Origin: Diplonema japonicum
Taxonomy: Eukaryota > Protista > Euglenozoa: Diplonemea
Direction: 5' to 3'
DNA length: 64,000 bases
NCBI GenBank assembly: GCA_964019335.1
Contig: OZ025695.1
Coordinates: 186,001-250,000 of the forward strand
Part shown: positions 12,600-60,162 of the stretch, piece by piece
Position numbering within the stretch: position 1 is the first letter of the stretch
Layout: each line of letters begins with the position of its first letter
Made by a program: the position numbers and the translations under genes
Notes under the pieces: generated by a model
The model's input: the letters and a program-made list of their open reading frames with translations, nothing else
Databases searched by the model: none
What the model was told of the DNA's origin: nothing

Positions 12600-13976
12600 T
12601 CACAGAGTGAACATCCTCAATGTAGCATCGTCTGAACCAGAAACAACCCACCCGTCTTCATGAGTCGCAAGGCACAGGGCGGTATTGCTGTGGCCTGTCC
12701 AGACGTGGGGTGGTTTGGTGGACATGGCACGTCCTTCATATCTCTTGATTTCGCCTTGGGTGTCCGCAGAGTAGAGGTGTTCACCCGCCCATTTGAGGGA
12801 AACGAACCCAGCCTCCTGCTTGATCTTGTCTCGGACGGTGTTGGACTCAGCGTTCCACATGGACAGGGTGCCGTCCCCGGCAGAACAGGTCGCGAAGTAC
12901 GGGAGGATAGGGCTCACCGCAATGCTCTCCACCGCCATCGTGTGCTCCATCAACACCACGCTGTTCACCTTCTTCTTCGCAATGCCTAGGATCGCCACGC
13001 TCCCGCTTTCATAACCCGCGATCACAACGTCAGCGTTCTTCGGGTGCCCCGCAACCGCTGTCACCCCACAGTCCGGCAGCATGTGCATACCCTTCGCCCT
13101 GATGTCGAAGTGCGCAAGCATCTCAGATGTCTTCGGTGAGAACACCTTCACCGCCTGGTCCTCCGATCCTGTTGCGAGAAGCTTGTTGTCGCTCACCAGA
13201 GCACCGCACGTTACCTGTTTTTTTTTTTTTTTTTTTTTTTTAGAAACACACCTCGGATGCGTGTCCTGCGAACACCTGGAGTACGACGCCCTTGTCGCTC
13301 CACATGACAGACTGCGAGTCAGCGCTCCCCGCAAACAGAACCCTTCCCTTAGGGTGCCAGAATAGGTACGTCACTGCGTCGCCCAGGTCTTCTAATGTGC
13401 TTATGAGGGACCCGTCGGTGGGGTTCCACAGCATAACACGGCCGTCCATGCCGCCGGTGGCGAGGATGGAGCCATCGAAGGAGAAGGCAACGCAGATGAC
13501 AGTGTCGGTGTGGCCTGTTAGCTCGAACAGGGGTTCGACATCTGTAGGTCCGGGGTTCGAGGGGTCCACCTTCCACAGGAACGCCTTGTCGTCCTCACCG
13601 CCGGACGCAACCAAAGGCAAGCTGGGATGCAGCGCCACGGCGTGCACCGCCTCAGTGTGCTTTTTCAGTACCGCCGCCGCCATGTCGGGGACGCCTTCTT
13701 CTTCCTCTTCTTCCATGTTCGCGTCGTCGCCCTCCACATCGTCGTCGTCACTCACAGGTGTTTCTTCACCGCCTTCATGCGCAATTTGAACCTAAAAATG
13801 AAAATTGAAAAAAGAAATTAAGGAAAACAAACGGGACGTACCATTCCTTGTTCCTCCAGCTCCTTCAGTGTCTCCATGTCGAGGACCTCCTCCATGTCGC
13901 TCGCCTCGGACTGGCTGTCCACGTCCATGCCCTCCTCGTCCTTGGGGATCTCGGGGGTCGGGTCGGCACCAGACAT
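12600..13976 (-). CDS. SQT1: WD40 protein, SQT1/AAMP-like ribosome assembly factor, 3 exons (13976-13842, 13791-13252, 13214-12600)
   Basis: Acidic N-terminus; SGGEDDKAFLW, GHTDTV, ATGGMDG, WHPKGRVLFAGS; spliced junction FAGHASE-VTCG. Confidence 0.85.
13215..13251 (-). other. 37-nt poly(A) GT-AG intron
   Basis: GTGTGTTTCT-A24-CAG; repairs a frameshift inside a WD repeat. Confidence 0.92.
13792..13841 (-). other. 50-nt GT-AG intron, conventional pyrimidine-rich
   Basis: GTACGT...TTTTTAG; joins the ATG 13976 exon in phase 0. Confidence 0.85.
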
Positions 13977-14101
13977 TTTTTTTCTCTTCTTTTTTGATGT
14001 GTAATGCGCTGCCTTAAGGGAGATAGGACGACCTGTCTGGTGGGGGGGGGGGGGGAAAAAAACGTAAACTTCCCTCCCCTGCTGGAAAGCGGGGAAGGGT
14101 T

Positions 14102-15517
14102 CTAACGGGCGGCGATGCGGAGCATGAACATGCCGAAAGCGTCGAGTGTGAGCTCCCCTGCAGGGGTGGCGTGTGCGTCGACGAATTCATTGAGACGTTT
14201 ATCGAGTGGGACTCCAAAGCGCTCCAGACAGCCGTCCATGAGCATTATCTCAGACCTGCTCAGCACGCCGTCGTGATCCACATCCAGGTCGGAGAAGAGC
14301 TTTTCGATCATCTTTTCGCTCAGAATTTCCGCTGCTGTGTTGTACTCATGCCAACCTTCGATCGTCTCAACGACCTTCCGCCGTACCTCTTCGATGCCCA
14401 CAACCTCCTCCTTCATCTCAACAAGGTCCTCCTGCGTCTCTTCAGGCAGCACTCCGTTCAGTTCCTTCAACGCAGTAATACTCCGTTCATTGTGCCGCTC
14501 CCAATTATCCATTGTTTCGCTGAAACCGCGAATGTTGTTTTGAATCGGTAGCATCTCCCCGACCTGTCTCAGGTACGCGGTTGCTGCAAGCGTCCATTGG
14601 TAAAGCACGTCAAGCGCAGGGGAGGCTGCCTTCATAACGGAGGTGAGTGTGATGGTGTCAACGAGATCAAAGAGCAACGCGCACCTGTCACGAGAGTACA
14701 CGATGGTGTTGGCGTTGAGAAGCGCGAAAGAAAAAGCGGCACACGACGGTTGGAAAACCGTGGAGAGGATGGTGTCCCACGAAGGGGAGTCGTTGAAGGT
14801 CGGCGCTGTGATGAGGTACGCCGCAGCGCATACTTTTTCGACCACAGGCAGCGGGTCAGTGGCCATAACTGCGTCAAAGTCAGTACAGTGATGAAGTGAC
14901 TTGGCTTGTGTTTTACGGTTTTCTATGCATTCGTCGAGAAGTCGCTTATCCTTTACTAGAGTGGCATGGGCTGCCAGGTACTCCTCTTCCAGGACGTCTT
15001 TCAGCATTTCAGTGTGGCGGACAACCTGTATAAGAGTCTTTTGTTTTGCCTTCAACACCCTTTGCCACAGTTCCGAACAGTCCCTCTCCAGTACGCCTTC
15101 TATTATGCCAGAGAAGGCGCTTAATAAAGGTAGGTTCAGGCTTTTCATAGTGCCTGAATCGACGTAGCCGTAATATTGCTCGTTGTAGGGTATGGGCCAC
15201 GGGTTGCTCAGGATTTCGAATAGTTTTTCTTGTCGGGTGTGTGTGAGGGAGTGCAAGGAGACGGTTCGGCTTGCTTTTAGAAGGTGTCTGCTGCTGCTGT
15301 ACAGCGCTTGGAGCGTGGTCTCCGACAGGCTGTTCATATTTGTCAGCGGGAGGCTCAAAAAGGTTCCCAGGACTTCCATCACGTTCGTGTACAAATCAGG
15401 AAGATCGGAAAACCGCAGCCTGTGTACTATAACCGACACGTTCACAGGCGGCGGGTCGGGAGCCTCGGGCAGCAGTCCCGCGATCTCCCTGCGAGCATCT
15501 TCATCGTCAATGTCCAT
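14102..15517 (-). CDS. Protein with dynein-stalk/microtubule-binding-domain-like region and C-terminal EF-hand
   Basis: DPLPVVEKVCAAAYLI, PSWD and KAASPALDVLYQWTLAATAY flanked by coiled coils; EF loop DVDHDGVLSRSE. Confidence 0.65.
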   Translation of the reverse strand: MDIDDEDARREIAGLLPEAPDPPPVNVSVIVHRLRFSDLPDLYTNVMEVLGTFLSLPLTNMNSLSETTLQALYSSSRHLLKASRTVSLHSLTHTRQEKLFEILSNPWPIPYNEQYYGYVDSGTMKSLNLPLLSAFSGIIEGVLERDCSELWQRVLKAKQKTLIQVVRHTEMLKDVLEEEYLAAHATLVKDKRLLDECIENRKTQAKSLHHCTDFDAVMATDPLPVVEKVCAAAYLITAPTFNDSPSWDTILSTVFQPSCAAFSFALLNANTIVYSRDRCALLFDLVDTITLTSVMKAASPALDVLYQWTLAATAYLRQVGEMLPIQNNIRGFSETMDNWERHNERSITALKELNGVLPEETQEDLVEMKEEVVGIEEVRRKVVETIEGWHEYNTAAEILSEKMIEKLFSDLDVDHDGVLSRSEIMLMDGCLERFGVPLDKRLNEFVDAHATPAGELTLDAFGMFMLRIAAR

Positions 15518-15731
15518 TTTCTTTTTTTTTTTTTTTTTTTTTTCCGTCTTGTCTCTGTGTACTTTTTTTTTTTTCCAGGAAAAAAAAAAAAAAAAAAAAG
15601 GAGAAAAAAAAAAAAAAAAAAAAAAAGCAGTGATTTCACGTCACGTGCTTTCCTTTTTTTGTTTCTCTTTTTTCTTTTTCTGACACTGTTTTGAAGAGAA
15701 AACGAAAAAAAAAAAAAAACCACCCCCCACC

Positions 15732-16448
15732 CTAGAACAATTCCTTTTGGCCCGGTGCGCGGACGAACAACTCGTTGCTTTCTTTTACGATCTGGTTCGC
15801 CTCGTCACCTATGATCCCACGAACCTCACTGTCGTGTAGCTGTTGCTTCCGAAGATCCGACATGATTCTGAAGTACTCTGCTGGGGCATCGTTGCTTTTG
15901 GGTGCCACGTCATCTGCCGCCATCCTCTCCTCGTACTTTTGCCTGGCCAGGGAAGATCCAGGAACAGGGATATTGTCCCCGTAATGGGAAATCAGACCTT
16001 TTTGGTCAATTTTCTTCCAGCTGACCACCTGCTCCTCATACGTGGGAGCAAAAGCTTTCAAATAGTACTCCCCCGTGTAGTCCACCACCCTTTGAATGAA
16101 CGTGAAGTTCCTGCTCCCAAGCATCACGATGGCGAAGATAGGGATCAACAGGTAAAAGATAATTTTCCCAATTTCCAATGGTGCGTACGCCCCGTCTGCG
16201 CGAAGCCAGTCAGGGAGGCTTTTGTAGTATTCCGGTTCCAAAGGGTTGTCGAGCTCTGTCTTAATCCCCGTTCTTTTTCTGAATTCTGATTGCATTCGCA
16301 GTTTCTGTGCCGGCCCCGCCGACGCTCTGAAGTCCTGCTTTTTCTCCTCCTTTTCCCCTTTGAAAAATCTCGTCACCCTGTCTTTCAACGACTGTCTTTG
16401 GATCTTCAATCCCAGCGTCGCCCTGATCTTTCTACCTATCACTGACAT
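15732..16448 (-). CDS. Hypothetical single-pass membrane protein
   Basis: 238-aa ORF with one hydrophobic segment (IIFYLLIPIFAIVMLG) and a basic N-terminus. Confidence 0.7.
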   Translation of the reverse strand: MSVIGRKIRATLGLKIQRQSLKDRVTRFFKGEKEEKKQDFRASAGPAQKLRMQSEFRKRTGIKTELDNPLEPEYYKSLPDWLRADGAYAPLEIGKIIFYLLIPIFAIVMLGSRNFTFIQRVVDYTGEYYLKAFAPTYEEQVVSWKKIDQKGLISHYGDNIPVPGSSLARQKYEERMAADDVAPKSNDAPAEYFRIMSDLRKQQLHDSEVRGIIGDEANQIVKESNELFVRAPGQKELF

Positions 16449-16642
16449 TTTCTTTTTTTTTTTTTAAAGCCTCCTGTCCGAAAATAATGCAAAACTAAAA
16501 AAAAGGGGGGGGGTAACTAAAAAATAAAAAAAAAGTACGTAAACAGGGACCCAGAGAGGTGCATGCCATATAAAATTCCATTTTTTTTTTTTTAAATTCT
16601 TTTCCTTCTGTTCTTGTTTCACACTATTTCGCGAGGGTCATC

Positions 16643-17713
16643 TCAGATAAGCTCTTTGGGCCACTCAAAACATTTCCCGATCTCGGCACAGTGCTCTTTC
16701 GACACGTACCAGTCGTCCATGTGCTCCCCAAAGAACCTAGAGTAGCCTCGAGAAGTGAGGATGTCATAGATTTGCTGCCGTTTGCCGGGTACAGCATTGT
16801 GCTCCACAGCAACGACCTTGGCGAGGGGAGGGGTGTTCTTGAGGACTAAGACCTCAGCACCTTCAACATCTAGAATCCATATGTCGGGGATCACATCAGA
16901 GTGCCCGGTAGCATGCCTGATGAGATGGTGAAGAGGCACGCAGGTTGCTGTTACATTAGCGCCACTGTCCACATCTTCTGATTCCTTGCTGAATTTTCGG
17001 ATGTTTCTCACGTGGTCCATGGAGATAGTGTCGGCCAACCCCCCCAGGGCGCCGTGCATGAGAAATGTGGCGGAGTGGACTCCATCGTAAATCGGCAAGC
17101 AAGATTGAGACGCCCATGCGTTTCTGTTTAAAGTCTTCAACCTGGCAAACAGCCCCGGGTTCGGTTCCACCAACAGCCCCTTCCAGTTCTTCTTGCTCTC
17201 CAACCATATCGTGTGGCTTTCCCTGCACCCGTCGTGCCCGCCCGATTCGATAAAAAACCCGTTTTCCTTCCTCCCGAACAGCTCCCATATGAACTGGTGC
17301 ATCGTGCCTTCTTTTTTAAACAGCGCGCGGGATTGAACAAGCTCCTCTGCGTCTTTCAGGGTGAAGCTCGATTTTAAAATCCGGAATTTTTTCTTGCTCT
17401 TTCGTCTCTTGCCATTTGCGTAGTACGCTGGGGGCAGTTCGCCGTCTTGCGCATATACGCAAGGTGGGTCAAGTGAATATGCGCTGCCTCCGCCAGATGG
17501 GGGAATGAGAGTTACATTAGACGGTATTGCCGCCTTTGTGCTTAGAAACTGCGCGAACATAGCAGTGGGCGGTTTTTCCTTTCCCGTCTCGACGGACGAG
17601 TCGGCTGCTGTTGTTTTCACAGCGCCCTTTGGATCCTTTTGTGAAAACTCCATGTAGGCGATGACGGCTGTCACGAACAGAAGTGCTGTTATCACGGTCC
17701 CTTTGGTTGTCAT
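16643..17713 (-). CDS. FkbM-family (Methyltransf_21, Star-like) methyltransferase, type II membrane
   Basis: N-terminal TM segment; GFFIESGGHDG, WKGLLVEPNP, LDVEGAE, VEHN. Confidence 0.88.
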   Translation of the reverse strand: MTTKGTVITALLFVTAVIAYMEFSQKDPKGAVKTTAADSSVETGKEKPPTAMFAQFLSTKAAIPSNVTLIPPSGGGSAYSLDPPCVYAQDGELPPAYYANGKRRKSKKKFRILKSSFTLKDAEELVQSRALFKKEGTMHQFIWELFGRKENGFFIESGGHDGCRESHTIWLESKKNWKGLLVEPNPGLFARLKTLNRNAWASQSCLPIYDGVHSATFLMHGALGGLADTISMDHVRNIRKFSKESEDVDSGANVTATCVPLHHLIRHATGHSDVIPDIWILDVEGAEVLVLKNTPPLAKVVAVEHNAVPGKRQQIYDILTSRGYSRFFGEHMDDWYVSKEHCAEIGKCFEWPKELI

Positions 17714-18008
17714 CTTTTTTTTTTTTTTCCTCGTCCCCCTCCTTTTCCACCCACTCCCCCTTTCAATTTTTTTTTTTTAATAGAGGACCGACTCGAAGGT
17801 GCTACGGGTAGACTTTCGTTTTTGGCCAAACGCGGGTGAGGAAAAAACCAAACGATGCAGGACAACCTGAGGAGGAAAGCAAAGTAAAAAAAGAAAAAAA
17901 AAAAAAGGGTACACTTAAAAAAAAAAAAATTCTTTCTTTTCTGAAAAAAAAGAAAAGAAAAAAAAAATCCGGGATTTTTTTTTTTTTTTTAAAAAAATTA
18001 TTTGATCA

Positions 18009-19305
18009 TCACTCAGCCCCCTCTATCATCTGATCCTCGTGATCGAGAGGTGTCCATAAACGGACTTTGAACTCATCCCCCGCCGCGACAAATGGCGCCA
18101 CAGGCGACAACGCGAGCGCACGGATAAAATGAGTCTCCGACACAGCAGAAGTGCTTGGGGTGACGTGCAAAGTGTCTGTCATGTTGCGGTCGATGACAAG
18201 CGGCTTGGATTTCGACGCAAGTATCGCAGTGACGGCCTCTTCGTGAGCCGTGAACCGCGCGATGGCCTTATGCCGGATCTGTTTCGGTCTCCCGAACATG
18301 GACAGGCATTTGTACGTTCGCGTGTCGAATATTCGTATACAGCTGTCCTTCCCCGCGGTAAGGATTTGGTTCCCGGTTTTGCTATACTGCACCGAGGTGA
18401 CCTCCGCACCCGAATGACACATTTCGATGGGCATCACAACCCACTTTGGTTGGGAAGGGTCCCATATTTTCATAGTCCCGTCTGAGGTACCGGACACGAA
18501 CGTCCTTCCGTCCGGAGAAAAATCGAGCGCGTTAACAAACCCTGCTGTTGAGCTGCCATGATCGCTGATGGGATCGGGGGCTCTGAATGCTTTTTCTTGC
18601 CGGATGTCCCAGAGGCGGACCTTTTTTTTTTTTTTTTTTTTTTTTCCCCCGTCATACCACTGGGTGATCGGTTCCTGAAAGAATGTGGAACCCACTAGGG
18701 TGCATAGCCATGGTGTTGACGCTGTGGTCGTCTTTGAAAATTGCAATGGCTCGCTTGGATCTCGGTAGTGTGTAGTTAAACATTCTTATGGCACCGTCCC
18801 TGCTTGCTGAGAAGATCACCGACGCCCTCGGTGAGAAGCCAACATCTTCGATCGACTGTGTTGCTTCACCGTAGACCCTTGTTAAAGCTGTTGAGGACGC
18901 GGACTTTGCTTCTCCTTTGTATGTGAGCATCTTGGACACGAGGAAGAGATGGGTCCCGCCTGTGGCGTCGCCTGCGAGTAGATATTGCCCGTCTTGGGAA
19001 AATTGAAGGGATTTGATGAGGGTGCCGTTCGCCGCGTAGAATCTGTTTATCATCTTTTCGCCTTGTCCGAAGTACGAGTATACTGTGTTCCAGGTGTCTA
19101 GCTTCCGTGCTCCTTCCTGTCCAACGTCGACTTCCATCGATTTCGCCACCATTGTCTCGAGTGTGTTCTCTCCTACCTCCTCAGATGACACTGCTGTCAG
19201 CGTGTCCTCACCTACATTCTGTGCGGTCGACGCGTAGCCGTCGTATTTCATTTGTTTTATAATCATGCGATACAGGTCGCGTTTGTCGCCCGTGGACGCC
19301 ATCAT
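18009..19305 (-). CDS. CSTF1: Cleavage stimulation factor 50 kDa subunit (WD40), 2 exons (19305-18658, 18620-18009)
   Basis: Dimerisation motif LYRMIIKQMKYDGY; WD repeats; spliced junction SGTDHPV-VRLWDI; GNQILTAGKDS. Confidence 0.88.
18621..18657 (-). other. 37-nt poly(A) GT-AG intron
   Basis: GTATGAC-G5-A24-G; no pyrimidine after position 7. Confidence 0.92.
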
Positions 19306-19589
19306 TTATTTATTCCTTTTTTTTTTTTCTCCTTTTCTAAAGGGTTAAACACCAATACGGGTGGTATGTAAAAGAATAACAAGGAATATACTAAAGAAGA
19401 GAGAGGGGGGGGGGGGGGGGGGGCAATCGAGTCAGAAAACGCATGCTAATTATTTTCGTTGTTTTTTTCTTTCTATTTGTCCGCACTTTTTATAAAAACC
19501 CCCCCTCTTTTTGTTTCTAATTGAGACAGTGTGTGTGTCAGGGGGGGGAGGGGGAAATGGGGAGAAGATAATACAAAAACAAAATCATA

Positions 19590-19623
<34 letters not shown>

Positions 19624-19685
19624 TTCCCATTCTCATTTCCACCCCCTTCTCTCGTTTCCTTTTCGTTCACAGTCGTTGTTGTCTT

Positions 19686-22600
19686 TTATACGTCTTGTTC
19701 GGCGTTTGCTTGCGACAAGCTGACGAACGTGCTGGCCTTTGACGCCCTCGAAGGTTTCTTGCTGGACCACAAATCAGAGATGGAAACTACGGTGGAGGCA
19801 GGTGAATCCGCAGGGGAGGCAGCAGAAGCCGCAGAAGAAGGGCTGAGTACATTATGCTTCGGCCTGTGCACAGCCCAATGCCCTGTTGGGTGTTTAGCTG
19901 TCACAGGAAACTGGGTGTGCGTGAGCTCAGCCTCAGTCGTCAAAAAGGCAGGCTCTTTGTGCATGACTGCGGACTTGACTCTCTCAGGCGGGAAGATCAC
20001 AGGTGTGGAAGGAACTACAAAGTCTTGAACGACCTCTTTCTTTTGCAAATAACGACCGCCCAGCGATTCCAGCAAAATTTCCCTCACAGTGTCGTCCAAT
20101 AGGGGATTGTCGACTGTCTTTTTAACTGTCTCGAACAGGTCCTTACTCCTCGCCTCTGTCTGACTTAAGCATGCCTCCAGCTGTGCACGCACTGCGGTGC
20201 TGATCACACCACCAAACTCAAGCAACACCCGCCGTACAGCAACTTTGGGTAAGTGTACTTTTTTTTTTTTTTTTTGACATACGTTGTACTGGAGTCGACG
20301 ACGTCAGCGACAGTTCCTCGACCTTCCCCAACTGTTCCTTCAGCTCCTTGACCTCTTTTCTCGCGTTGATGGCTTCAAGCTCAAGGCGTTCGATTTCAGA
20401 TTGAAGCTTCTCGGTCGCTTCCCCAAGCCAGCCCTGCGTCGTGGTCGACTCCCCTGCAGGGGAGTTCTCCGTCATCCCAAGCGATTTTTCTAAAAGCGGC
20501 ATTTCGAGATCTTTGGTTGGCTCGGGAGCGTCAGGTTCTGGTGAGCCTGGCATGTCCCGTTGAGAGCGGATCAATATACCGTCGTTGTTGAGGACGAAGA
20601 TCTCGTAGAGTAGAGGGAGGGAGCGCTCCCCAGGTGAGAATGTCAAGAGGCTCGATAGTGTGAGGGTCCTCTCGTTCCGCGGCCCGCGGAGCTTTCGAAT
20701 GACGGCGTTCCACAACCTCTTGGGAAGGCGCAGCTCGCTCGGCGGAAGGTCCCTCACAATGTCTATCACGTTGCGGACGTTGTTCGTGAGGTTTGCTGCG
20801 ATGACAATGTCCTCCAACGTGAAGGACACGTCCCACTCACTCGCCGAATCACCCGTCCCAAAAATATGCCTTAGAAACGCCAGCTTCGCGGTCATGCAGT
20901 AAAACGGCAACGGCACGAAGAACAGCAAACACCCTATCCCCGACACCGCCAACCCCGTCCTTGCCATGATGTGCCGCATCTGCTGCATGGACGACCGCTG
21001 GTTGGAATACTTCCTGAAGGCGTGCATCCACTCCTGAGGGAACCACCCTATAGGAATGGTTCGGAACAAGTGCGCACCAAGCACTTCATCGGGCAGCATA
21101 GCGCTCATCCCTATCAAGCCTACTTTGTATGCGGAGTACAGCAAATGAGCCCCGACAGCCATCAGCAAGAACAGTTCGGCCCATAACATGCATAAGATAG
21201 AGAGGTTTAAGTTAATCGAAGGGTTGCGGTCAGGCCGCTTCTGCCAAGCTAGAATAATACTGATCGTGTTCAGGGAAGCTGCGCCGATCTTGATCCAGAA
21301 CGAGGTCATCCTGTCCCACGTGACGTGCTCCCCCAAAGGGTACAAGGGTTCGATGTCAATTGAAGCTCTGTTCTTTCCTCGGAACTGTTCGAATGTCGAC
21401 CGCAGTTGGTCGCGCCACCCATCAGGGACCAACGCCACGCCGCAAGGGCACTGCGGCAGCCTACGGAGACGTCGTTCAGTTCCAAAAGTGTCGACCCACG
21501 ACTTGGTCTCCGTCACCTTTGGTATGAAGAATAGCTTCCTCCTGCACTCCACACACATTGTCCTACCCGTCTGCTCGTATTTTTTCTTCCCTTTTACCGT
21601 GCTTTGTTCTTCCAACGCTGCACTGGCACGCAGCGTCACAACCAACGTCCCCAGCTTTCCCTTGTTCCGTCTCATCAACGCGATGTCGCCGGAGTTGCCA
21701 GGGCGTGCGGTCAGTTTCAATGGAAGCTCCTTGCTTTTCGATATAAGCTGGGTTATCTCAGTGGGCTTCAAGGAGACCTGAGCATAACCGAGGAAGTCAT
21801 GCTCGCCAAGACGGTCATCGTCGTAGACCACAAAGCGGAGACTGATAGACGTGTCGGGTGTGAGGTCCAGTTTGAAACGCTCGTTCCACACGGGGTTGAG
21901 GTTCTTGGGAAGGGCAGCGGTGCGCATCTTGTCCTTGGTGGGCACGACGCCCACAGCCTCAAACACGACGTAAGGGTCGCTTGTCCCAATGGCGTCGGCA
22001 GCGATGAGATCTTTCGCGCAGTTGATGGCAACCTCTATCGAGGCAGGCGTGCTCGAGATCAACCCCAGCTCTTGGATGAGCATCGCGAACTCGGTTCTGT
22101 CGATCACACCGTCACCGTTCTCGTCCAGCTTCTTCAACAGGTTCTCGAACGACTCCAGATCGTTCACGCTGAGCCTGTTCTGCAGTTCCTTGTTCGTCCT
22201 GAAGTACCCTTCGATTTCCTTTGCGGACAGCACACCGTCGCCATCGATGTCGATGAGGTTGTACACCTTGTCCCATTCTGCCGCGATGGCCTGTTCAGCG
22301 GTGTCCTCTTGCTGCCCGCTGCCAGGCCCGCCCATGGCGACGACGCGGTTGCGTTGATACTCGAATTCGAACACGCGGAAGTCCTCTTCCTCTTCCTTGT
22401 CACCGCAGAAGACTGTTGAAAAGTACGCCCCATCGACACCGAAGTGCCAATGGAAACGGACGTCAGTGACATGCCGTAGCTTCCCGTCTGTGTCGGAGTC
22501 GTTGTAGAACTGCTGTATCTCTGTCTTGAGTTTCGAGTCGAAATCTTCGTTCCTCCTGCACCTCCCCGAGGCGCCGCATGAGCAGTACTTCCGTTCCATG

Positions 22601-25802: not shown

Positions 25803-25863
25803 ATTTCTTTTTTTTTTCTTTCTGTCATGATGCACGTACACACCAACTTTTTTTTGTTCTCGA

Positions 25864-25901
<38 letters not shown>

Positions 25902-28509: not shown

Positions 28510-28549
<40 letters not shown>

Positions 28550-28681: not shown

Positions 28682-29544
28682 TTAGTTCCTGCTTTCCAGC
28701 ACCCATTTCCAAATTTCTTCCGCCTGTGTCTCGGTGAAAAGGTACATTTCGGCGAATTCCTGCAAATCTTCTTGCTCCCAATCCTGGAGCTGTTCAACAG
28801 ACATTTCAGCTAGTTTTAATTTTTCGATAAAGATTTGCACCACATCCGACCCAGTGCTCGCCGCCGGTGGTAGCTGCTTACCTGCCAGCGTTTTGTTCTG
28901 ATGTTGAACTGGTAGGTTAAGGGTGTTGCTGGCATCCATCCGGGTAGGCTCATCAAACGTGGCTTGCCCTTCTGGCTCAAGAGAGTCACCAAGGGTCATC
29001 GAAACGCCTTGACCGCCCTAAGATTTTTTTTTTCTCTTTTTTTCATCTTCCAATACCTGGAAGAAGGCTGGTAGATCCCCTTTCCCCGCCCCAGGGAACC
29101 CCGCCTGCTGCCTCGGCTTCTCAAGCCTCACCCCTGTTGACGTTGCCGCCGGCATCGGCTCCGCCCTCTTCTTCGCGGGGCTCTTTGTTCCCACGTTCTG
29201 CATCCCTACATTCGCATCTGAAGTGGAAAAAGAGGGGGAAACATAAATTTGGGAGGGAGAAGGCACTCAACATACCCATCCATTTGAATTCACCTGGCTG
29301 GTCCTGAGCTGGTGTGGGCCAATTCGGTTGGGCCTATTTGGAGTGTTTTTTTTTTTTTTTTTTTTCCCTCCCATTTGTTGTCACCTTGTCCTTTTCCTTC
29401 TTCACATGAGCCTGTGCCTGTGCCTGAGCCTGGGCTTGTGCTTGGGCCTGAGCTTGTGCTTGGGCTTGAACTTGAGCCTGCTGCTGGAGTTGTGCTTGAG
29501 CCTGAGCTTGAGCTTGAGCCTGTGACTTTTTTTTTTCTCTTACC

Positions 29545-29583: not shown

Positions 29584-30997
29584 GCTTGCTGTTGGAGCTG
29601 TGCCTGGAGCTGTTGCTGCTGAACGACACCAGCAAGGCCACCGGGGTGCTGGGCCTGCTGGAGCTGGAGCTGAAGTGCTTGCTGTGTTAAGGATTTCTTT
29701 TTTTTTTTTTCTAAAGGAAACCTGTTGTTCCAAGGAGAGGCCGTAGAGGCCGGTGGTGTCCAGCCCAGACCCATCCATGGGGATGAAATTGTAGGGAAGC
29801 CCACCCGCATTAGGGAGCCCTAGCCCCAAGGGGTTCAGGTTGTTCTGGAGAGCTTGACTGCTCTTCAACTGAACCGCTCGCTTCTCAATGTGTTCCGCAG
29901 CCCCTGGCTGTCCCGCGATTTCTTGGAGTAGCCTTTTTTTTTTTTTTTTTTTTTTTTTTCCCATACTGAACCAACGCCTCCTTTGGTGCCCCTTGCACGG
30001 CATATAAGCTTTGCGCGCTCAGAGCCATCGGTTGCTTCTTTTGTGATGGCATGGCAACACCCTTTTGCATCTTCTTATCCTTGTCTTGTCCCTTGATTTT
30101 TTTTTTAACGTGAGAAAGAGAAAAAAAAAAAAGCGACATCGTCCGAGCGTGTGTGAGGGGGAAAGATTTTTTTTTTTTTAAATTCCACCTCCTCCTGGAG
30201 ATAAGGGAACCAAGAAAAAAAAAAAAAAACAAGAAAAAGGTTCTTTTTTTTTTCTTTTTTTTTTTTTTTCCTGCCTCTTTTTTTTTTTTTTTTTTTTTTT
30301 TTGGTCCCGTTGAATCGTATAAAATATGGTAGTCCTGTGTAAACAGATTTTAGAAAAAAAGGGGAACAAAAAAAAAAAAAAAAAAAAAAAGAAAAACGAT
30401 TTTTTTTTTTTTTTCTACCGCCCTTTTTCAGCCGGCATCCTTTCGTATCTCGTGTGCACTTGTGCTTTTTCTTTTTTTTTTTTTATTTATTTATTTATTT
30501 ATTTTGTTTTTTGTTTTGTGGGGGGGGACATGGGTACAACACATTGGGAAAAAGGGAATTTTTATTGGTTCTAATTTATATAAGTGTTACAGCGCCAATA
30601 CCTAACCAGGGAGTCTGCGAGGGTGTCCCCCTAGCTCCACCGAACACCAACAATGCTTGCAGCCGGACATCTTGGCGCACAACTTCGTCACGCCCCCCAA
30701 GCACCTAGGCATCTCGTAAACAGACTCTACATTTTCCTTCAGTCCTCCTCCCCTCACGCTAAAGTAAAAGTGCTAGATAGGCTAAATAAACAAATCCCTA
30801 AAATCTGGTAAACCTTAACATTAGTGAAGAATAGCCGTAATAATAATAATAAAAAAAAAAAATTTTTTTTTATTATTATTATTATTATATAGGACATAAG
30901 TATATGAAACGAAAAGGAGGGAAAAGAAAGACAAAGAAAAAAAATAAATAGAATGGAATAAAAAAAAAAACACGCCCGGACGAAATAGGGGGTGGGG

Positions 30998-31047
<50 letters not shown>

Positions 31048-31314
31048 ACACACCTGCTGTATGACCTCTTGTACGCTAGGCATGGCCTGGCCCGGGGTGT
31101 ATTGTTGAAGAGAGTTCACGATGGACGCGACTGTCTCCGGGGTCTGGCTTTTAAGCTGTTGCTGTAGTTGGAGCACTGGGCACTCTAATATGTGTGTCGG
31201 TCGGTGCTCACTTTGACAATTAACAGAGCAATACGCCGCCTTGTAGCAGGGGCACGGCATGTGGTGCCCATTCTGCTTTACAGTCCCGCAGTATGAACAC
31301 TGAGCTGGATTCAT
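28682..31314 (-). CDS. MYND zinc-finger, Gln/Ala-rich protein of about 460 aa; exons 31314-31054, 30091-29967, 29932-29722, 29681-29580, 29519-29385, 29333-29276, 29217-29057, 29017-28682
   Basis: MYND motif CSYC...CPCYKAAYCSVNCQSEHRPTHILEC. Six short GT-AG introns each restore the frame without stops. The phase-0 link between the MYND exon and exon 2 is inferred. Confidence 0.72.
29018..29056 (-). other. 39-nt A-rich intron
   Basis: GTATTGGAAGATG-A7-GAG-A10-TCTTAG; retention gives an in-frame stop. Confidence 0.8.
29218..29275 (-). other. 58-nt intron, conventional pyrimidine-rich
   Basis: GTATGTTG...CCACTTCAG; phase 1. Confidence 0.8.
29334..29384 (-). other. 51-nt poly(A) intron
   Basis: GTGACAACAAATGGGAGGG-A20-CACTCCAAATAG; phase 0. 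Confidence 0.72.
29385..29519 (-). repeat. Coding (Ala-Gln)n low-complexity repeat exon
   Basis: GCTCAA/GCACAG hexamer repeats encode AQAQAQ. Confidence 0.85.
29520..29579 (-). other. 60-nt intron with U30/A10 hairpin and atypical GTTTT donor
   Basis: G-T30-AAAGGGTAAGAG-A10-GTCACAG; joins QQQAQ-AQAQ. Confidence 0.75.
29682..29721 (-). other. 40-nt A-rich intron (alternative in-frame 25-nt form)
   Basis: GTTTCCTTTAG-A13-GAAATCCTTAACACAG; joins LEQQ-QALQ. Confidence 0.75.
29933..29966 (-). other. 34-nt poly(A) intron
   Basis: GTATGGG-A26-G; joins ALVQ-LLQEIA. Confidence 0.85.
30092..31053 (-). other. Probable 962-nt intron, possibly containing alternative or micro exons
   Basis: CAG|GTGTGT donor and ATCAAG| acceptor, both phase 0. 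Confidence 0.55.
30602..30758 (-). ncRNA. Candidate structured intronic RNA or stop-containing alternative exon
   Basis: Complex-sequence island within homopolymers; five nested complementary segments; flanked by TTTAG| and |GTATTGG. Confidence 0.3.
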
Positions 31315-31323
31315 TTTTTTCTT

Positions 31324-31360
<37 letters not shown>

Positions 31361-31523
31361 TCCCGAGAAGAGAATAATATCAATACGACCAACAAAGGAA
31401 GAAAAAAAAATAGGGAAAAAAAAAAAAAAAAAAAAAAAAGAGACATTTAAGGGTACCTGCGGTATGTGGCAGGACGCCTAAAAAAAAAAAAAGGTAGAGG
31501 GGAATGGGGAAATGGGAGGAAAC

Positions 31524-31564
<41 letters not shown>

Positions 31565-32360: not shown

Positions 32361-32401
<41 letters not shown>

Positions 32402-32984: not shown

Positions 32985-33017
<33 letters not shown>

Positions 33018-33476: not shown

Positions 33477-35921
33477 TCAATCCTTCAAATCGTCGATGTG
33501 AACAATGCTCTCAGCAGGTTTTTCAAAGAGCTTCTCGATAAATGTTTTTTTCGACTCCCCGGTCGCGCCGGTTCTGAAGGAGAGGGAAGACGAAGCTGTG
33601 GGTGAAGACGAGAGCTCGGCCTTGGGCCACAAGGGGTTAGGGTGCTGAGATGATATGGGCGATAAAGAATTCCTTATCCGCCGCTCCTTCTCAAGCTCCG
33701 TTTTGGTGTGAGCCAACTGCTGGCGAAGCTCGTCCTCAGTGGCTGTAACAGACCGAGAGCGCGCGGCGTCACGGAGTGCTGCTGCAGCCAGTTCCAAGTT
33801 TTGAGCAGCGATCAGATCAGGGGACTGCGGCCTCTCCTGCAGCTCTCCCCTTGCAAAGCTTGGATTCTTCTGCCTTCCAGCACTCAACAAAGGCTCAACA
33901 AGCCCAGATGACTGGCTCCCCACCAACGGGTCGGGCATCGACCAGTCATTTTTCTTCATCTGCCTGTCTTGCAAAAGGCTTCCAAGCCCAGTTGGAAACG
34001 CATGTTCCTTAGACAGCCTTTTAGTAGGGCTTCCGAAATGCAATGGACTGCCTGGTCCCAGCGACGCTCCGTCCCAACGGTCGCCCATCTGAAACCCTCC
34101 CGTTATGATGTCAAGCGACCGTCCTTTTCCAAAGAATCCGTGAATCAAGGATTTGATTATAGGAGAACGCATGTACCTGCAGGACTCCCGTTCCGTGAGA
34201 ACAGTGATGCATGTGTGGATGATGGATATTCTGTTGGCGATTGACTTCCAAGCCTTTGTCGCCTTCATGTGTTGTGAGGTGGTGTCGGGTATGGCGAACA
34301 AACGCGAGTTATCGCCAAGCTGTATTGTTGTGAATGAAGAGGGTACCATGCACACGGCCTTCACGACGGGGATGCCGTGGCCGGTGGGGGATGACGGTTC
34401 GGACTCGCAAGACTTCGCCGTACCATGCAGCAGAACGTAGATAGTCCCACGCTTCAAAACGATCTCTTCGCTTGTTTCTGATATGATGGACCCGCCATTG
34501 CACAGTTCGGCTAGGTCTTTTCTGTTAAACTTTTGGAAGTCACCCGTTTGCGCCAACACCTTTTGCGAAGCATCAACACCTGCTGTGTACCACATCGCAT
34601 TCAGCATGACAGGGTACTGCCTTGCAATCGTCATCAGCTCACTATGCGGTATGGACAGAACAGTTAAGTCTGTGTCTGCAGTTGCTGTGTTATGTTGTGT
34701 CTCAAGAGACCCGTCGTTGAGGGCGTGGAATAAACCCACAGTATGCCCTGGGCCTAGATAGTATTGGGTCCCCATTACGTTCTCCTTTCCGACACCTGTT
34801 AGGATGATGACGGTGTTGCCCGGTTCGCAGATGATGCTTCCTTTTCCTACAGTTTTGTTCTCTGATCTCGTGAGGAGCTTTCGGAGGGCAGATTCGTCCT
34901 TTGATGCCCATGGTACTTGTTGTAGGACCTCAGATGCGTCTGGTGGGTTCATCTGTTTTGTGGTGTCGCGTTTTAAAACCTCCATGTTCTTTTCAATCTG
35001 CTCGATGAGGATCGTCCCGTCACCGGGTTCCAACCTCCCACCGGAGATCTCCTTTTCCACCGCGTCTCTTGAACGGTTCAACACGACACGGGAGGCCTGT
35101 TTTGTTTTGATAGCCACTGCAACCTTTGGACGCTGTACTTCATGCTCGCCCAGCAACGCCAAACCTTCAGAACGTTCTTGTTTGCAATGGTCTCTAATAC
35201 GGTTCACTGTTTCTTGGGGAAGGTTGAAGCTCCCTATCTTTCGGTGGATGGCCTCGTGGGACTGAATGTACGCCGTGGTGATCTCGAACGCAACAAGCCA
35301 TCGCTTCGCCTCCAAATTACCTTCAAGCGAGCTTTTCAGCCCATAGCACGGGACCACGAACGCCTGGATGCGGTCCACGAAAGATGGTTTGAAGAGGTCG
35401 TGGAGCATAGTGGTGTGGAGGAGGGCGGAGGACTTTTTGAACTTCTCAGATTGAATCTGCGCTTTGTTCGCGTCGCGCACCACCTGAGACTTCTCGAGCA
35501 GCCATCTTGTCGATGAGGCCTGAAGCGTTCCCTGGTGGTTCAGATGCCACAGCTCTGCAATGAACACCTTAAAGTACGCGTCCCTTCCCATTGTGAACGA
35601 GTCGGTCATGCTATCGCCGTCACACCCACCATACGGGTCCTCCGCTCGCTCTACCGTGAAGTGCCTCACTTGCGACCAGTTTGCCATTGCCATCACGCTC
35701 TCCGAAGCCAGCTCGTGGATTGTCCTTTCCTGTTCCTTCACTGCGACTTCGTGGGCGTCGCTCATCGCTTTCTTCCGAGTTGTCGGGATGTCCGCCAAAC
35801 CCAGCCGCTTCACCAAGTACCCCGTTGAGATCCCGTTTACGACCAGCGTCAGGATCACAATGCCGCTTCCGAAAAAGATGAAGTGAGGTCCTAGATGCGG
35901 GTGGCTGGAAAAAAAAAATTG

Positions 35922-35954
<33 letters not shown>

Positions 35955-36056
35955 CCCTCACATACCTGCAGGCAATGTCTTGGTCGTTCTCAACTATCAG
36001 AACCAACGCCAACCCCACTGCTCCACGGAGGCCACCCCATGTCACCAGTGCGCTGT

Positions 36057-36106
<50 letters not shown>

Positions 36107-37359
36107 CTTTCATACCCATTATTCATATCCAGTTTGTACCGGAACTTTCTCAAGATGGGGCTCAACACCAGCAAAACAACCGCGCGAACCGCATTTATGA
36201 TGAGGTACATGAGGAGGAGCCAGCCGTAGTCGGAAGCAGAGATGTCCGAGAAGGCCTTCTTGGAGACAATAAGCCCGGCCAGCGAGAAGATAACGGTGTT
36301 GGCCATGAAAACAAGAATGCCCCAGAATCCATGGAGCATGTGCTCAACCTCGGGAGAGAAACACTGACGATGCATAGAAAGGTAAAGACCGAGTAAGACA
36401 AGCGCGAGGACACCAGAGATATGAAGAACACCCTCTGCGACGAAAAAAGTGATGTACGCGGCAGCTACCGACAGCGTGACCTCGATGTAAGGGTCGTTGA
36501 AAACCCGTGAAAGAAGCCCCTCCAAAATAACAGCCACAATGACACCCAAGATAGGCCCCCCGATGGAAATCCGGAACAGCTCCCATACAATCTCACCCGC
36601 GCTTTTATCAAGAACACCGCTGGGAACAGCGTCCTTTAGAATCGTGAAAATTACAATGGCGGTTCCATCATTGAAAAGCGACTCGCCTTCAATCAATGTC
36701 GACACCTCTGCACTACAGCCCAACTCCTTTAACAGAGCCACGACCGCCACTGGATCCGTTGCCGAAAGAATAGCACCAAGGAGTAAACATGTCACCCATG
36801 ACCATCCATACGGGTCGGAAGCTGGTAGAATAAGTTTTGCAAGGCTTGCCGTACACCCTGACGCAATGACGATCCCCGGCCCTGCCAGAAGAATGCAATG
36901 CGGGGCAACCTTTTTGAACACATGCCCGTCTATAGAAAACGCGGATTCGAAGATCAAGATGGGCAGGAAAATGTAGAAGATAAGATGCGGGTCGATGTCC
37001 GCGAGCTCCGTTCCGTTGTCCAAAAAGTTGTCGTTCTCCTCCCCGATCGTGGACAGGAACCCGTACAGCAGCCCTACTAGAAACACCAAAATTGTGTAAG
37101 GCACCCTTGCAACCACAGTACCCTCCTTTGCGGCCCATCGGAGCAACGCCCCGATCCCAATAGCACTTGCAAGCGCCATCACACTGTATGGCGGCTTCAG
37201 AGAGTCGGCATGGTACGTGTGGGACTTGTCCTGACACGCGTCAATGGTAAGGCACACATCGTTCACCCTTGCGCAGAAATATATGTGTGTTGCGGTGTCT
37301 AAAGGTGTCACTGTCGCCGTGGGCAACAGTGTTAGAGTGGAAGTTGCGTTGATACTCAT
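33477..37359 (-). CDS. SOS1/NHX7-like Na+/H+ antiporter with cytosolic cNMP-binding-like domains, 3 exons (37359-36116, 36052-35966, 35904-33477)
   Basis: FLPILIFESAF, SATDPVAVVALLKELG, IEGESLFNDG; spliced junctions NNG-ALVTWGGLRGAVGLAL and DIACS-HPHLGPHFIFFGSGIVILTLVVNG. Confidence 0.92.
35905..35965 (-). other. 61-nt intron, A-tracts followed by a short U-tract
   Basis: GTATGTGAGGG-A20-GAG-A10-CAA-T10-CCAG; repairs a frameshift. Confidence 0.9.
36053..36115 (-). other. 63-nt poly(A) intron
   Basis: GTATGAAAGGGGT-A44-CCACAG; removes a poly-Lys insert just before the TM helix WGGLRGAV. Confidence 0.88.
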
Positions 37360-48102: not shown

Positions 48103-48404
48103 TGTTCCCTGTGGTGATGTGCAAGAAGCCGGGGGTCAAGAGGTAGACAGGTGCCGCACTTAATCTCATTCCTCAAACTCTAGTATTGCATGGTCGGGGT
48201 ACTGCACTAACTTTAGATTCGTAACAGAGCCCTGGTGGTGTGCCTGTAAAGAAATGTGCCGAAATATACAACCCATACCTGAGCAGCTTGCTCCCGCAAC
48301 CAGTCCGCGTAAGTATCGGGTGCTCGAAGGTATGAGAGATCAACGGCAGAGAACAGTACCTATTATTTACACGTAATGAAATAAAAATAAAAATTGCGGT
48401 GCCC

Positions 48405-49250: not shown

Positions 49251-49395
49251 GGTGTCCTAGAGGTGCTATGCGCTCAAGTAACGCTTAAAATCTCGTTTAC
49301 TAGACTTCTAAAGCAGTATGGAGGAGGGTTTTTTCTTGAGGGGGGGGGGGGGGGGGGGGGGATGCTTGTTATACTACCCTTTTTTTATCTCTATT

Positions 49396-57307: not shown

Positions 57308-57384
57308 CCTGTCATCCTGTAATGTGTAAGCAGGACCAGGCTCGGTTACGGAATACAATACAAGAAATAAATGAATAGACAAAA

Positions 57385-58344
57385 CTACATAACCTCCATC
57401 CCTGCCATCAAAGGCTTCGGAGGTGCTTGGCGATACTCGCCTTTGAAGACGATGGTGTTGTTCGGCGTGCTGCCGCTCCACAGACGGATCTCGTGGAGCA
57501 GCGCCCGGTGTGCGGGGGTCATGACTTCCTGGAGAGAGGTCCAGATAAAGGATGCGAGATTTTCGGTGGTGGGGACGTTGAGGCGGAAATAAGGGACATC
57601 GGTGTCCAAATGCTTATGGTCGAGGGTGTCGATGACAGAGCGGCGAAGGTAGGTGGAGAGACAAGAAGGAGAGATCACATGCCCGGTGGTGGGGTTCACC
57701 GAACCACGTATGACCAGTTCAAGTGTGAATGTGTGCCCGTGGATACCAGTGTCCTTCCCGTAAAGAACCGCATTCTCATCATTAGAAAGGGAAGGCGCGC
57801 AGAGCTTACGAACAGCGGAGAACTCTTGACGAGTTACAACATCGACAACGGGCACTGCAATAGGAGCCTGCTGTGTTCTGGGAACTGAGTACGACTCCAC
57901 TGCAGGCATGGATGGGGAATGCCGTGGAGAGCTTGTCGCAGACATTCTTTCTTGTTTTTCAGGCAACGCTTGATGCAAGAGCTCATCGGTGACTCCCGAT
58001 TTCTCCAAGACCTTGATATACTGGTCGTGGGGATCGATCTCTGCAGCTTTTTCTAACAGAATAGTTGCTTCTCCGTACTGCCCAAGGAGGCGTAAGGCTA
58101 ACGCTGCCTTCACGTACCCCTTTGACCACTCAGGGCGAATTTCGATGCAACGCCTTGCGTCGGACAAGGCGAGGTCGCCCTTTCTCAGGTTCAGGTAAGA
58201 TGCGCTTCTGTTCGATAGGAGGTGTGTGTCCTCCCCTTTGATCTCCATTGCTTTGCTGTACGCCTCCACCGCATCCCAGAATCGGCCCCCTTGGTAGTGC
58301 CGGTTTCCGTCGCCACACAGTATCTTGGCCGTTTCAGAGTCCAT
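57385..58344 (-). CDS. TPR (STI1/SGT-type) fused to a 6-pyruvoyl-tetrahydropterin synthase-like domain, catalytically degenerate
   Basis: Three TPRs (GNRHY, AVEAYSKAM, LSNRSASY, PEWSKGY); PTPS motifs DEN..LYGK, HGH, LDHKHLDTDVPYF, TTENLA, NNTIVFKGE. Confidence 0.88.
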   Translation of the reverse strand: MDSETAKILCGDGNRHYQGGRFWDAVEAYSKAMEIKGEDTHLLSNRSASYLNLRKGDLALSDARRCIEIRPEWSKGYVKAALALRLLGQYGEATILLEKAAEIDPHDQYIKVLEKSGVTDELLHQALPEKQERMSATSSPRHSPSMPAVESYSVPRTQQAPIAVPVVDVVTRQEFSAVRKLCAPSLSNDENAVLYGKDTGIHGHTFTLELVIRGSVNPTTGHVISPSCLSTYLRRSVIDTLDHKHLDTDVPYFRLNVPTTENLASFIWTSLQEVMTPAHRALLHEIRLWSGSTPNNTIVFKGEYRQAPPKPLMAGMEVM

Positions 58345-58599
58345 TTTTTTTTTTTTTTTTGTACTGCAAAAAAAAAAAAAAAAAGATTTTTTGAAAGTGA
58401 GGGGGGGAAAAAAACGGATAGGAAAAAAAAGGGGGGGGGGGCAGTGAGGCGGATGGATTGTACTTTTCTTCCTGATAAACTTTTTTTTCTTTTAATCCCA
58501 TGTTTCTTTCTTTTTTTTACCCCTTCTTTTTTCTCCAACAAAACAAATGAAATAATAATAAAAAAATCCCCTATTTTCTTTTTTTTTCTTTTTTTTTCA

Positions 58600-58961
58600 T
58601 CATATCTCCTTCACCCCGGTGAAGGTATTACAACCAGGGAAGGGGTTCCCTTTCGAAAGGACCACTGTTTGGTGCTGGCGAGAAATGTAACCCTAAAAAA
58701 AAAATTGTTGCCAAAAAAAAAACTTTTTTTGATACCTTAATCTGCCCATTTGCGATGAGGCACACGAGGGCACATTCGATCTCGTCAGGGCTGATCGTCT
58801 TACCGTTGTTGGCTGTCTCATAGGCAGCTGTGAGCTGGGCCATCTTGACCCTAGAGGAGAAGGTGGCGTCGCCAGGCTTAAGAGAAACAAGGCAGTAATG
58901 GACGCGCCTTGTGAGGTTCAAGAAGCACATCATTCTCGCACGATGCAGGATCACATAAATT

Positions 58962-59006
<45 letters not shown>

Positions 59007-60162
59007 CCAGCATACCAATTTTGCAAAGAAAGACGCGTTATCCTCGATCGCCTTATCGAACTGGTGTGTGTTCCCCACCTGGATCGCCTCCACAAGCGGT
59101 TGGAAGATGGCCGTCAAACCATATTCGGCAAGCAGCTCGGACGACGGGAATTTCCCCTTTTTTTTTTTTTTTTTTTTTTTTTCCTTCCCAAAAAAAAAAA
59201 AAATAATAATAATAATAATAATAATAACATACCTGCACCAATTTCACCGTGACAAGGAAAACCAGGATGCGGATCTGGTTTTTTCTGTACGAGGTGTGGC
59301 ACAGCTTGAAGGCGGCTTTCAGATCCTCCTCAGCTTCGTTAAACCGCTGTTCCAACATGCTGACCCTGCCGGAGTAGAACAAATGGGTAACACGCTGCCC
59401 CTGCGTCGTCAGGTCGAGCGGCGACTTCGTCCCATCTTTGCTGCTCTTCTCGATCTCACGCGACAGCATTTGCATGGAAGGCTTGATGACACCCATATTG
59501 TTTGTGTGGAAAGCGGCTTTGCTGAGGTTGTTGCACAGCGTGACCATTCCACGTTTCTTTGAGTCAGCGATGTTCGGCGTGCGATCCGAGCCGAGCTTTG
59601 AAAGAGAAGTTTGCAACGCCGATGTAACCTCATCCATACGTTTTCCTCTCTTCCCTTCCTGCTGTTCGTACAAGTATGCTATCCGTCTGGTTCTGTTGAG
59701 GATGGGGCCTAGCATTTCGACCATCCAGGAAGGCTTTTCGCAGTTGTCTGACGAGCAGTCGCCGAGGTATTGATTCAGATTCTTGACGGCGGTAAGCATG
59801 AGGTTGTGCGCTTTTGCGATGTCGTGATTGGACTCAACGACGCCTTGTGTGAAGCATCCTACCAAAGCTGCGATTTTCTTGTGTGGGCCGATGCACCAAG
59901 GGGATAGTTTTCCCGCCAGCTCTTCCGCGCTTCCAGCACCGGATTCTTTCCAGAGCTTCTCTGCGGTGCCGTTGACATTGTTGAAGAGCTGCACGAACGG
60001 TGTTGGGTCCAGTGCTTCCAGACCCATTTGCAGCGTGCTCATCACCCCCCTCGCCTGAACCCCCGAGTACATCCCTCCTATATTCCCCCTTCCCGTCATA
60101 CCATCCCCTTGGCCGTTACCTTTCCCTCCCTTCCGTTTTTTCGCCTTTCCTCCACCAAACAT
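58600..60162 (-). CDS. PCID2: PCI domain-containing protein 2 (Thp1/Csn12-like, TREX-2), 4 exons (60162-59233, 59156-59016, 58963-58736, 58692-58600)
   Basis: SKKRG, QRVTHLFYSGR, KNQIRILVFLV; spliced junctions LVQ-GKFPS, FAKL-GIYVIL and DEIEC..LI..GQIK-GYISRQHQTVVLSKGNPFP. Confidence 0.9.
58693..58735 (-). other. 43-nt intron with a U-rich 3' end
   Basis: GTATC-A7-G-T10-GGCAACAA-T10-AG. Confidence 0.9.
58964..59015 (-). other. 52-nt poly(A) intron
   Basis: GTATGCTGG-A42-G. Confidence 0.92.
59157..59232 (-). other. 76-nt intron with U14/A25 hairpin
   Basis: GTATG-(TTA)8-T14-GGGAAGG-A25-G. Confidence 0.92.

Follow-up and report, generated by a model that had tools for sequence, protein, structure and literature searches.

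The stretch of DNA analyzed here, a 64,000-nt window of the genome of the marine protist Diplonema japonicum (contig OZ025695.1, positions 186001 to 250000), holds genes interrupted by short introns in which a sense-strand A homopolymer stands in the place of the branch site and the polypyrimidine tract. On balance, we favor reading these as ordinary U2-type GT-AG introns, 34 to 76 nt long, in which the branch adenosine would be drawn from the A-tract and the A-tract itself would have grown by slippage. An initial annotation, made from the letters alone, had pointed to seven such segments. On the minus strand, each of the seven has the sequence that it gave, and removal of each joins two open, coding-like frames. 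Its claim that GT-AG introns of this type are removed from mRNA is proven at the RNA level for four of the seven (59157-59232, 58964-59015, 36053-36115, and 18621-18657) by two transcript-derived proteins, P0001 and P0004, and by a contig of sequencing run X2. Because such introns are removed from mRNA, D. japonicum does use 3′ splice sites that lack a pyrimidine tract, as had been proposed. The verified introns are as follows, with a slash marking each exon junction in the protein.

59157..59232, minus strand: intron 1 of the PCID2/Thp1-like gene, 76 nt, GTATG-(TTA)n-T14-GGGAAGG-A25-G; P0001 reads VKLVQ/GKFPSS.
58964..59015, minus strand: PCID2 intron 2, 52 nt, GTATGCTGG-A42-G, the last 45 nt without a pyrimidine; P0001 reads FFAKL/GIYVIL.
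58693..58735, minus strand: PCID2 intron 3, conventional and T-rich, 43 nt, GTATC-A7-G-T10-GGCAACAA-T10-AG; P0001 reads ANGQIK/GYISRQ.
36053..36115, minus strand: Na+/H+ exchanger intron, 63 nt, GTATGAAAGGGGT-A44-CCACAG; P0004 reads LDMNNG/ALVTWGG.
35905..35965, minus strand: Na+/H+ exchanger intron, 61 nt, GTATGTGAGGG-A20-GAG-A10-CAA-T10-CCAG; P0004 reads DIAC/SHPHLG.
18621..18657, minus strand: intron of a CSTF1-like gene (CSTF1_dimer plus WD40, Pfam), 37 nt, GTATGACGGGGG-A24-G; absent from X2 contig record 15, present in DNA contigs X6 and X7.

P0001 (463 aa) and P0004 (1252 aa) are Trinity transcript proteins from the EukProt set EP01064_Diplonema_japonicum; in homology searches, PCID2 exon 1 retrieved the former and the C-terminal open reading frame (ORF) of the exchanger the latter. 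Because both are 100% identical to the window exons, over 463 and 1252 aa, the species is D. japonicum. Protein homology search also returned a homologue from D. ambulator at 79% identity, and the closest named genome protein, from Diplonema papillatum, is 42% identical; a relative's protein at 50% identity, P0003, ends in ...VKLVQV. Exon-by-exon mapping with tblastn placed residues 1 to 310 of P0001 at 60162-59233, residues 314 to 357 at 59147-59016, residues 356 to 433 at 58969-58736, and residues 434 to 463 at 58692-58603, and the four PCID2 exon translations, when concatenated, equal P0001 in a local equality check. P0001 reads straight through the three junctions listed above, and PCID2 therefore has three introns. 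Taken together, P0001 and P0004 prove that five introns, three in PCID2 and two in the exchanger, are cut at exact borders. Frame alone could not have proven 36053-36115, because this segment of 63 nt is in frame and stop-free, yet P0004 shows that it is removed.

For the CSTF1-like gene, the evidence is X2 contig record 15 (852 nt, from a relative about 3% diverged), in which 18414-18612 and 18656-19149 are separated by 6 letters, versus 43 in the window. Since 8 exon letters are masked and 2 are ambiguous with the intron end, the 37 absent letters are exactly 18621-18657. Depth arithmetic suggests that run X1 likewise lacks this segment. Over 13150-19149, runs X1 and X2 represent two other organisms, about 3 to 5% diverged, with coverage of ORFs only; the transcriptomes of close relatives are their probable source. 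In X2, there is also a 3-nt insertion (TGT) behind 17608.

Long-read assemblies miscount homopolymers, and a stop-free, in-frame segment such as 36053-36115 might in principle be translated, so that the A-runs could be assembly or sequencing artifacts or could encode poly-lysine. We attach practically no probability to either idea. Contigs from the short-read-like DNA runs X6 and X7 (two studies, zero differences) reach about 30 nt into the homopolymer of 18621-18657 from either side; because they enter the A-run from both sides, the run exists in DNA, which disposes of the assembly artifact that the initial annotation had allowed for. An independent draft assembly gives the same picture (PMC12621601), and the transcript proteins contain no lysine runs. 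For the verified introns, artifact and read-through are both refuted; the exact run lengths are uncertain.

Further introns, most of them candidates, were read from the window.

13215..13251, minus strand: candidate intron of a WD40 protein, 37 nt, GTGTGTTTCT-A24-CAG; frame and WD-repeat continuity (GHASEV/TCGALVSDNKLLATGSEDQAVKVF, GHASEV/TCGALV...ATGSEDQAVKVF).
13792..13841, minus strand: candidate conventional T-rich intron of the same WD40 gene, 50 nt; frame joining with a high coding score.
29933..29966, minus strand: candidate intron of a Q/A-rich gene of unknown function (ATG at about 30070, stop at about 28690), 34 nt, GTATGGG-A26-G; frame restoration only.
29334..29384, minus strand: candidate intron of the same Q/A-rich gene, at 28.7-30.1 kb, 51 nt, GTGACAACAAATGGGAGGG-A20-CACTCCAAATAG; frame restoration only.
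29218..29275, minus strand: candidate conventional pyrimidine-rich intron of the Q/A-rich gene, 58 nt, with pyrimidines at 19 of the last 20 nt; sequence reading.
9571..9636, minus strand: mixed intron of an LRR-kinase gene, 66 nt, GTATG-T18-CCCGAAGGGGAAGC-A23-TCACAG; removal restores the catalytic loop YLHSQ/NVIHSDIKPSN.
9423..9479, minus strand: conventional intron of the LRR-kinase gene, 57 nt, (CT)n-T17-ACAG; removal joins DFGCSRK/IDDLSTGIQGTPAYMSPE.
48244..48278, minus strand: candidate conventional intron, 35 nt, GTATGGGTTGTATATTTCGGCACATTTCTTTACAG; frame joining.
20243..20282 (40 nt) or 20258-20282 (25 nt), minus strand: candidate A17 intron, both versions in frame; frame joining only.
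32409-32446: candidate T-rich intron in the AT-rich stretch 30400-33400.

The list was curated by hand; automated frame-joining catalogues were too noisy at short exons. Frame and WD-repeat continuity make 13215-13251 a candidate intron, and frame makes 29933-29966 and 29334-29384 candidates; these last two stay at that level because a homology search with the Q/A-rich gene returned zero homologues. A protein search with the WD40 exon 13252-13791 was dominated by giant multi-WD40 proteins and left the junction at 13215 uninformed. Because PDB searches with both exons flanking 13215 gave generic WD40 matches only, this junction is unplaced on a homologue, and the name SQT1, which the gene had been given, is unsupported.

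All listed introns have GT...AG termini, and most have an extended GTATG[T] donor. In the A-type introns, which span 34 to 76 nt, A accounts for 17 to 20 of the last 20 nt; pyrimidines number zero in the last 20 nt of 59157-59232, 58964-59015, 18621-18657, and 29933-29966. No YTNAY branch motif was found 10 to 40 nt before the AG in the pure A-run introns. The described ends free of pyrimidines and of YTNAY are thus borne out over the last 20 to 45 nt. A polypyrimidine tract is present in 58693-58735, 9423-9479, and 29218-29275, and conventional introns do occur in the same genes, as had been noted: PCID2 has the cDNA-verified 58693-58735, and the kinase gene has 9423-9479.

In the reading that we favor, a strong GTATG donor would define the intron, and U2 would take its branch adenosine from the A-tract or, in mixed introns, from the A-tract nearest the 3′ end, which would leave the branch-site consensus degenerate. 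The 3′ splice site would then be whichever AG comes first beyond the branch point at a distance that permits splicing, and the uridine tract and the canonical contact between U2AF65 and RNA would be dispensable. The A-tracts would originate from genome-wide homopolymer growth in noncoding DNA and, within introns, would be tolerated and slightly preferred to T-tracts. Support for this reading comes from the exact excision, from the published features of introns in this species, from a canonical U2, and from the presence of a U2AF65-like gene. A-rich, T-rich, and mixed introns coexist in the same genes.

The choice of AG is informative about this mechanism. The initial annotation had suggested, as an example, that splicing uses whichever AG comes first once a strong GTATG donor lies about 30 nt behind. 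We reject this rule, as three introns ignore AGs at +30 to +49. The verified intron 59157-59232 passes over an in-frame AG at +49 (T14-GGGAAG) for the AG after A25, and the verified intron 35905-35965 passes over AGs at +32 and +34, after A20, for T10CCAG at +61. The kinase motif is kept only if 9571-9636 passes over its in-frame AGs at +30 and +36. Of the overall interpretation offered earlier, then, the tract-less 3′ sites are real and the first-AG rule is wrong. We infer that a branch point in the A-tract fits the six verified introns and would also explain the skipped AGs (+49; +32 and +34; +30 and +36 in 9571-9636). Pure A-run introns, 58964-59015 among them, have a predicted fold of 0 kcal/mol. 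The mixed U-run/A-run introns 59157-59232, 9571-9636, and 35905-35965 are predicted to pair into U·A hairpins, with precisely the skipped AGs inside them; the hairpin is significant for 9571-9636 only (-17.7 kcal/mol, z = -3.2).

The splicing machinery was examined in the assembly. At least seven full-length U2 small nuclear RNA (snRNA) genes lie on different contigs (139 to 141 bits). The 5′ half of these genes, in which the GUAGUA branch-binding box lies, is identical to the consensus. Divergence of U2 snRNA, listed among the checks in the initial annotation, is excluded by the identity of GUAGUA and its flanks to the consensus; U2 is fully canonical. On contig C12, a U2 snRNA gene is located about 0.8 kb from a signal recognition particle RNA gene on the same strand (L005:1501-1693 and 2468-2772). 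A U2AF65-like gene is found at C19:433063-434211 (L001:1516-2664), with human U2AF65 RRM2 and UHM as its best PDB matches. Its RRM2 has KLVMSGF as RNP2 (human KLFIGGL) and KACCVFEF as RNP1 (human KGYAFCEY), so that three canonical RNA-stacking aromatics are replaced. The RRM2 exon of this gene is itself preceded by an A-run. A search for the SF1-HH family gave no match anywhere, and its controls were likewise unmatched.

To place the intronic A-runs in context, we compared them with homopolymers elsewhere in the assembly. The window has 50% G+C and nearly all of its long ORFs on the minus strand; another 200 kb of this contig (C48) is one-stranded as well, giving a single-strand array of genes (coding-like ORFs) of at least 264 kb. 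Such a polycistron-like array fits a diplonemid (Euglenozoa) origin of the window. These 264 kb of one contig (C48:1-270000, with the window at 186001-250000) served as an oriented sample. On the + strand of the 62.5-Mb assembly, GTATG-N0-12-A15 occurs 493 times, versus about 100 times for reversed-pattern controls, and GTATG followed by T15 at the same spacing occurs 249 times. Within the oriented sample, an A-run lies behind 8 of 183 sense GTATG donors, 0 of 142 antisense GTATG donors, and 5 of 516 permuted donors; the association between GTATG and A-runs exceeds chance and is strand and donor specific. Sense-strand runs of at least 12 nt in the sample number 174 for A and 149 for T, the majority outside introns, and the noncoding sense DNA of the sample has no A bias (A, 28.5%; T, 27.8%). 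Among runs of at least 15 nt that are not donor proximal, there are 100 of A versus 86 of T. When the genome-wide + strand ratio behind donors (493:249) is set against this one-contig background, the odds ratio for A over T is 1.7 (p = 0.002), which speaks against an A-run frequency equal to background, an outcome that the initial annotation had considered. Introns thus show a mild preference for A-tracts.

Homopolymers are by no means particular to introns. About one-third of homopolymer introns hold T-runs, and G and C homopolymers of 17 to 22 nt occur in noncoding DNA (49340-49361, 19405-19423, 32784-32802, and 33456-33474), indicating that homopolymer growth extends beyond A and T. A-run lengths range from 13 to 44 nt. 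The idea that the A-run is a length filler and would for that reason be longer in introns was dropped, as intronic and other run lengths do not differ significantly. A mutational origin of the A-tracts is favored because long A- and T-runs are found genome-wide in noncoding DNA, also before start codons. A stricter version would hold that the tracts are neutral filler throughout, with slippage expanding any noncoding DNA, a relaxed spliceosome being indifferent to it, and the A excess reflecting a mutation or transcription-strand bias. Long runs of all four bases throughout noncoding DNA, the equal length of intronic and other runs, and, in the 264-kb sample, an A:T ratio that does not differ significantly between intronic and other runs (p = 0.19) agree with this version. 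We nevertheless judge it improbable, given that sense noncoding DNA is not A biased, that A outnumbers T behind donors beyond background (p = 0.002), and that the choice of AG is not indifferent, specific in-frame AGs being skipped.

A-runs are also tied to gene starts. A long coding ATG follows within 60 nt for 31 of the 174 A-runs, and within 10 nt for 13 of them, versus only 4 of the 149 T-runs. Sense A-runs before ATG include 60162-60176, 15522-15543, 16453-16465, and 58344-58360, and some A-runs themselves contribute the first base of the start codon. When 65 inferred starts are taken together, T is most frequent at -100 to -41 and A at -40 to -1. Poly(A) is therefore not confined to introns; the A-runs before ATG may be poly(A) leaders or acceptor-proximal trans-splicing tracts. 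These patterns bear on a “two-acceptor code,” under which A-tracts would be selected in cis-introns since intragenic U-rich tracts would mimic spliced-leader trans-splice acceptors. The strictly one-stranded gene array, the T-rich zone ahead of the leader at the inferred starts, and the relative depletion of T-runs in introns would all be expected on that account. Against it, T-run or pyrimidine-rich cis-introns are common (the 249 GTATG+T15 occurrences on one strand, and the verified 58693-58735), and because gene leaders are A-rich up to the ATG, A-tracts do not mark cis sites alone. We regard such a code as very improbable.

The A-tract could also act as a positive 3′ splice-site signal that replaces the pyrimidine tract, bound by a re-specified U2AF65 or by a poly(A)-binding protein that recruits the U2 small nuclear ribonucleoprotein. 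This explanation is unlikely on present evidence but merits real consideration. Two introns bypass an AG just after a T-run in favor of an AG after an A-run (59157-59232, verified; 9571-9636, motif supported), A-runs are overrepresented relative to T-runs behind donors compared with the background, and RRM2 of the U2AF65-like protein has lost its canonical aromatics. On the other hand, T-run introns make up a sizable minority, conventional introns occur in the same genes, 35905-35965 bypasses an AG after A20 for T10CCAG, intronic A-runs have the same lengths as nonintronic ones, and A-runs are equally typical of gene leaders. In the form in which a protein reads the tract directly, U2AF65 with an RRM2 devoid of uridine-stacking aromatics, or a nuclear poly(A)-binding protein, would read oligo(A) and recruit U2; this, too, we think unlikely. 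If it were true, the identity of the “polypyrimidine” signal would have switched from U/C to A in this lineage, and A-tracts before ATG could mark trans-splice acceptors or leaders.

Several points weigh against the branch-in-A-tract reading that we prefer. The position of the branch point within the A-tract is itself something that we infer, and the GUAGUA box of U2 would pair poorly with pure A. The loss of aromatics in RRM2 could reflect recognition that is changed but still specific, and not an absence of recognition. The 1.7-fold excess sets a genome-wide count against a background from one contig, and within the 264-kb sample alone, the contrast (21:11 versus 153:138) is not significant. 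Finally, the transcript proteins show a single isoform, and minor use of the skipped AGs is possible.

Apart from the introns, the window has other features of note. An intronless ORF of 1229 aa at 244-3930 carries the bacterial-type domains GH114, DUF4832, and DUF4874 and is a candidate for a laterally acquired carbohydrate-active enzyme. The AT-rich stretch at 30400-33400 (36 to 41% G+C) is dense in homopolymers and lacks long clean ORFs; an ORF at 30757-31446 has a MYND zinc finger. In two short intergenic segments, 16436-16605 and 13973-14062, contig depth rises about 10-fold in each of the four runs, and joints and loose ends are numerous. This pattern points to a short repeat, or a low-complexity element, dispersed among the intergenic regions.

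Although the initial annotation presented them as new, poly(A)-tract introns in D. japonicum were already published in 2025 (PMC12621601). Thakur et al. (RNA 2025, PMC12621601) reported 10,131 introns supported by transcriptome sequencing in this species. Of these, 98% are GT-AG; the donor reads (G)/GTATG, and the median length is 41 nt. Only 13.9% contain YTRAY, A is the commonest base in the 20 nt that precede the 3′ splice site, and U2AF1/2 are present (PMC12621601). The introns in the window share with the published ones the species, the donor, the short length class, and the A-dominated last 20 nt, and nothing essential differs; the published statement is at the level of a sequence logo, without a mechanism, a background comparison, skipped AGs, or A-run gene leaders (PMC12621601).

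Since the description is already in print, the value of the present analysis lies in the open mechanism. What is added here is that the first-AG rule is wrong, that U2 is canonical, that A- and T-runs fill noncoding DNA, and that introns prefer A about 1.7-fold on the genome-wide count. Handles on the mechanism are the skipped AGs, the foldable mixed U/A introns, an RRM2 without stacking aromatics, and A-tracts common to gene leaders. For annotation, such introns will escape gene finders that were trained on pyrimidine tracts, or will be read through as poly-lysine. More generally, a free-living eukaryote with canonical U2 snRNA routinely splices GTATG + A(n) + G, and the requirement for a tract can thus be relaxed or re-specified.

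Outside budding yeast, a pyrimidine tract read by U2AF65 is the textbook mode of 3′ splice-site recognition, and conventional U2-type introns of metazoa, plants, and fission yeast have a branch site, a polypyrimidine tract, and a YAG. The introns in the window have in common with these the GT-AG borders, a U1-complementary donor, canonical U2 snRNA, and precise excision, but their AG may follow as many as 45 nt free of pyrimidines, YTNAY is lacking, and the acceptor is often AAG rather than YAG. Budding-yeast introns and mammalian “AG-dependent” introns have a U-tract that is weak or can be dispensed with, and their 3′ splice site is the first AG met when scanning past the branch point. The mechanism proposed here would resemble this in its dispensable tract, its use of the next AG after the branch, and its disregard of AGs near or upstream of the branch; yeast, however, compensates with an invariant UACUAAC branch site, whereas D. 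japonicum introns show no visible branch consensus. The tiny introns of ciliates and of chlorarachniophyte nucleomorphs, 15 to 35 nt long and A/T-rich with no clear tract, are similarly very short and without a recognizable pyrimidine tract, but their length is tightly fixed and their A and T are mixed, whereas the introns here span 34 to 76 nt and vary with the length of a pure homopolymer. Closest in phylogeny are the nonconventional introns of euglenids and hemistasiid diplonemids, whose non-GT-AG ends are joined by base pairing (PMC12621601, PMC6221363). They belong to the same phylum, and the mixed U-run/A-run introns of D. japonicum are likewise predicted to fold donor to acceptor; unlike them, the introns described here have GT-AG borders, and the pure A-run class is predicted to be unstructured (0 kcal/mol).

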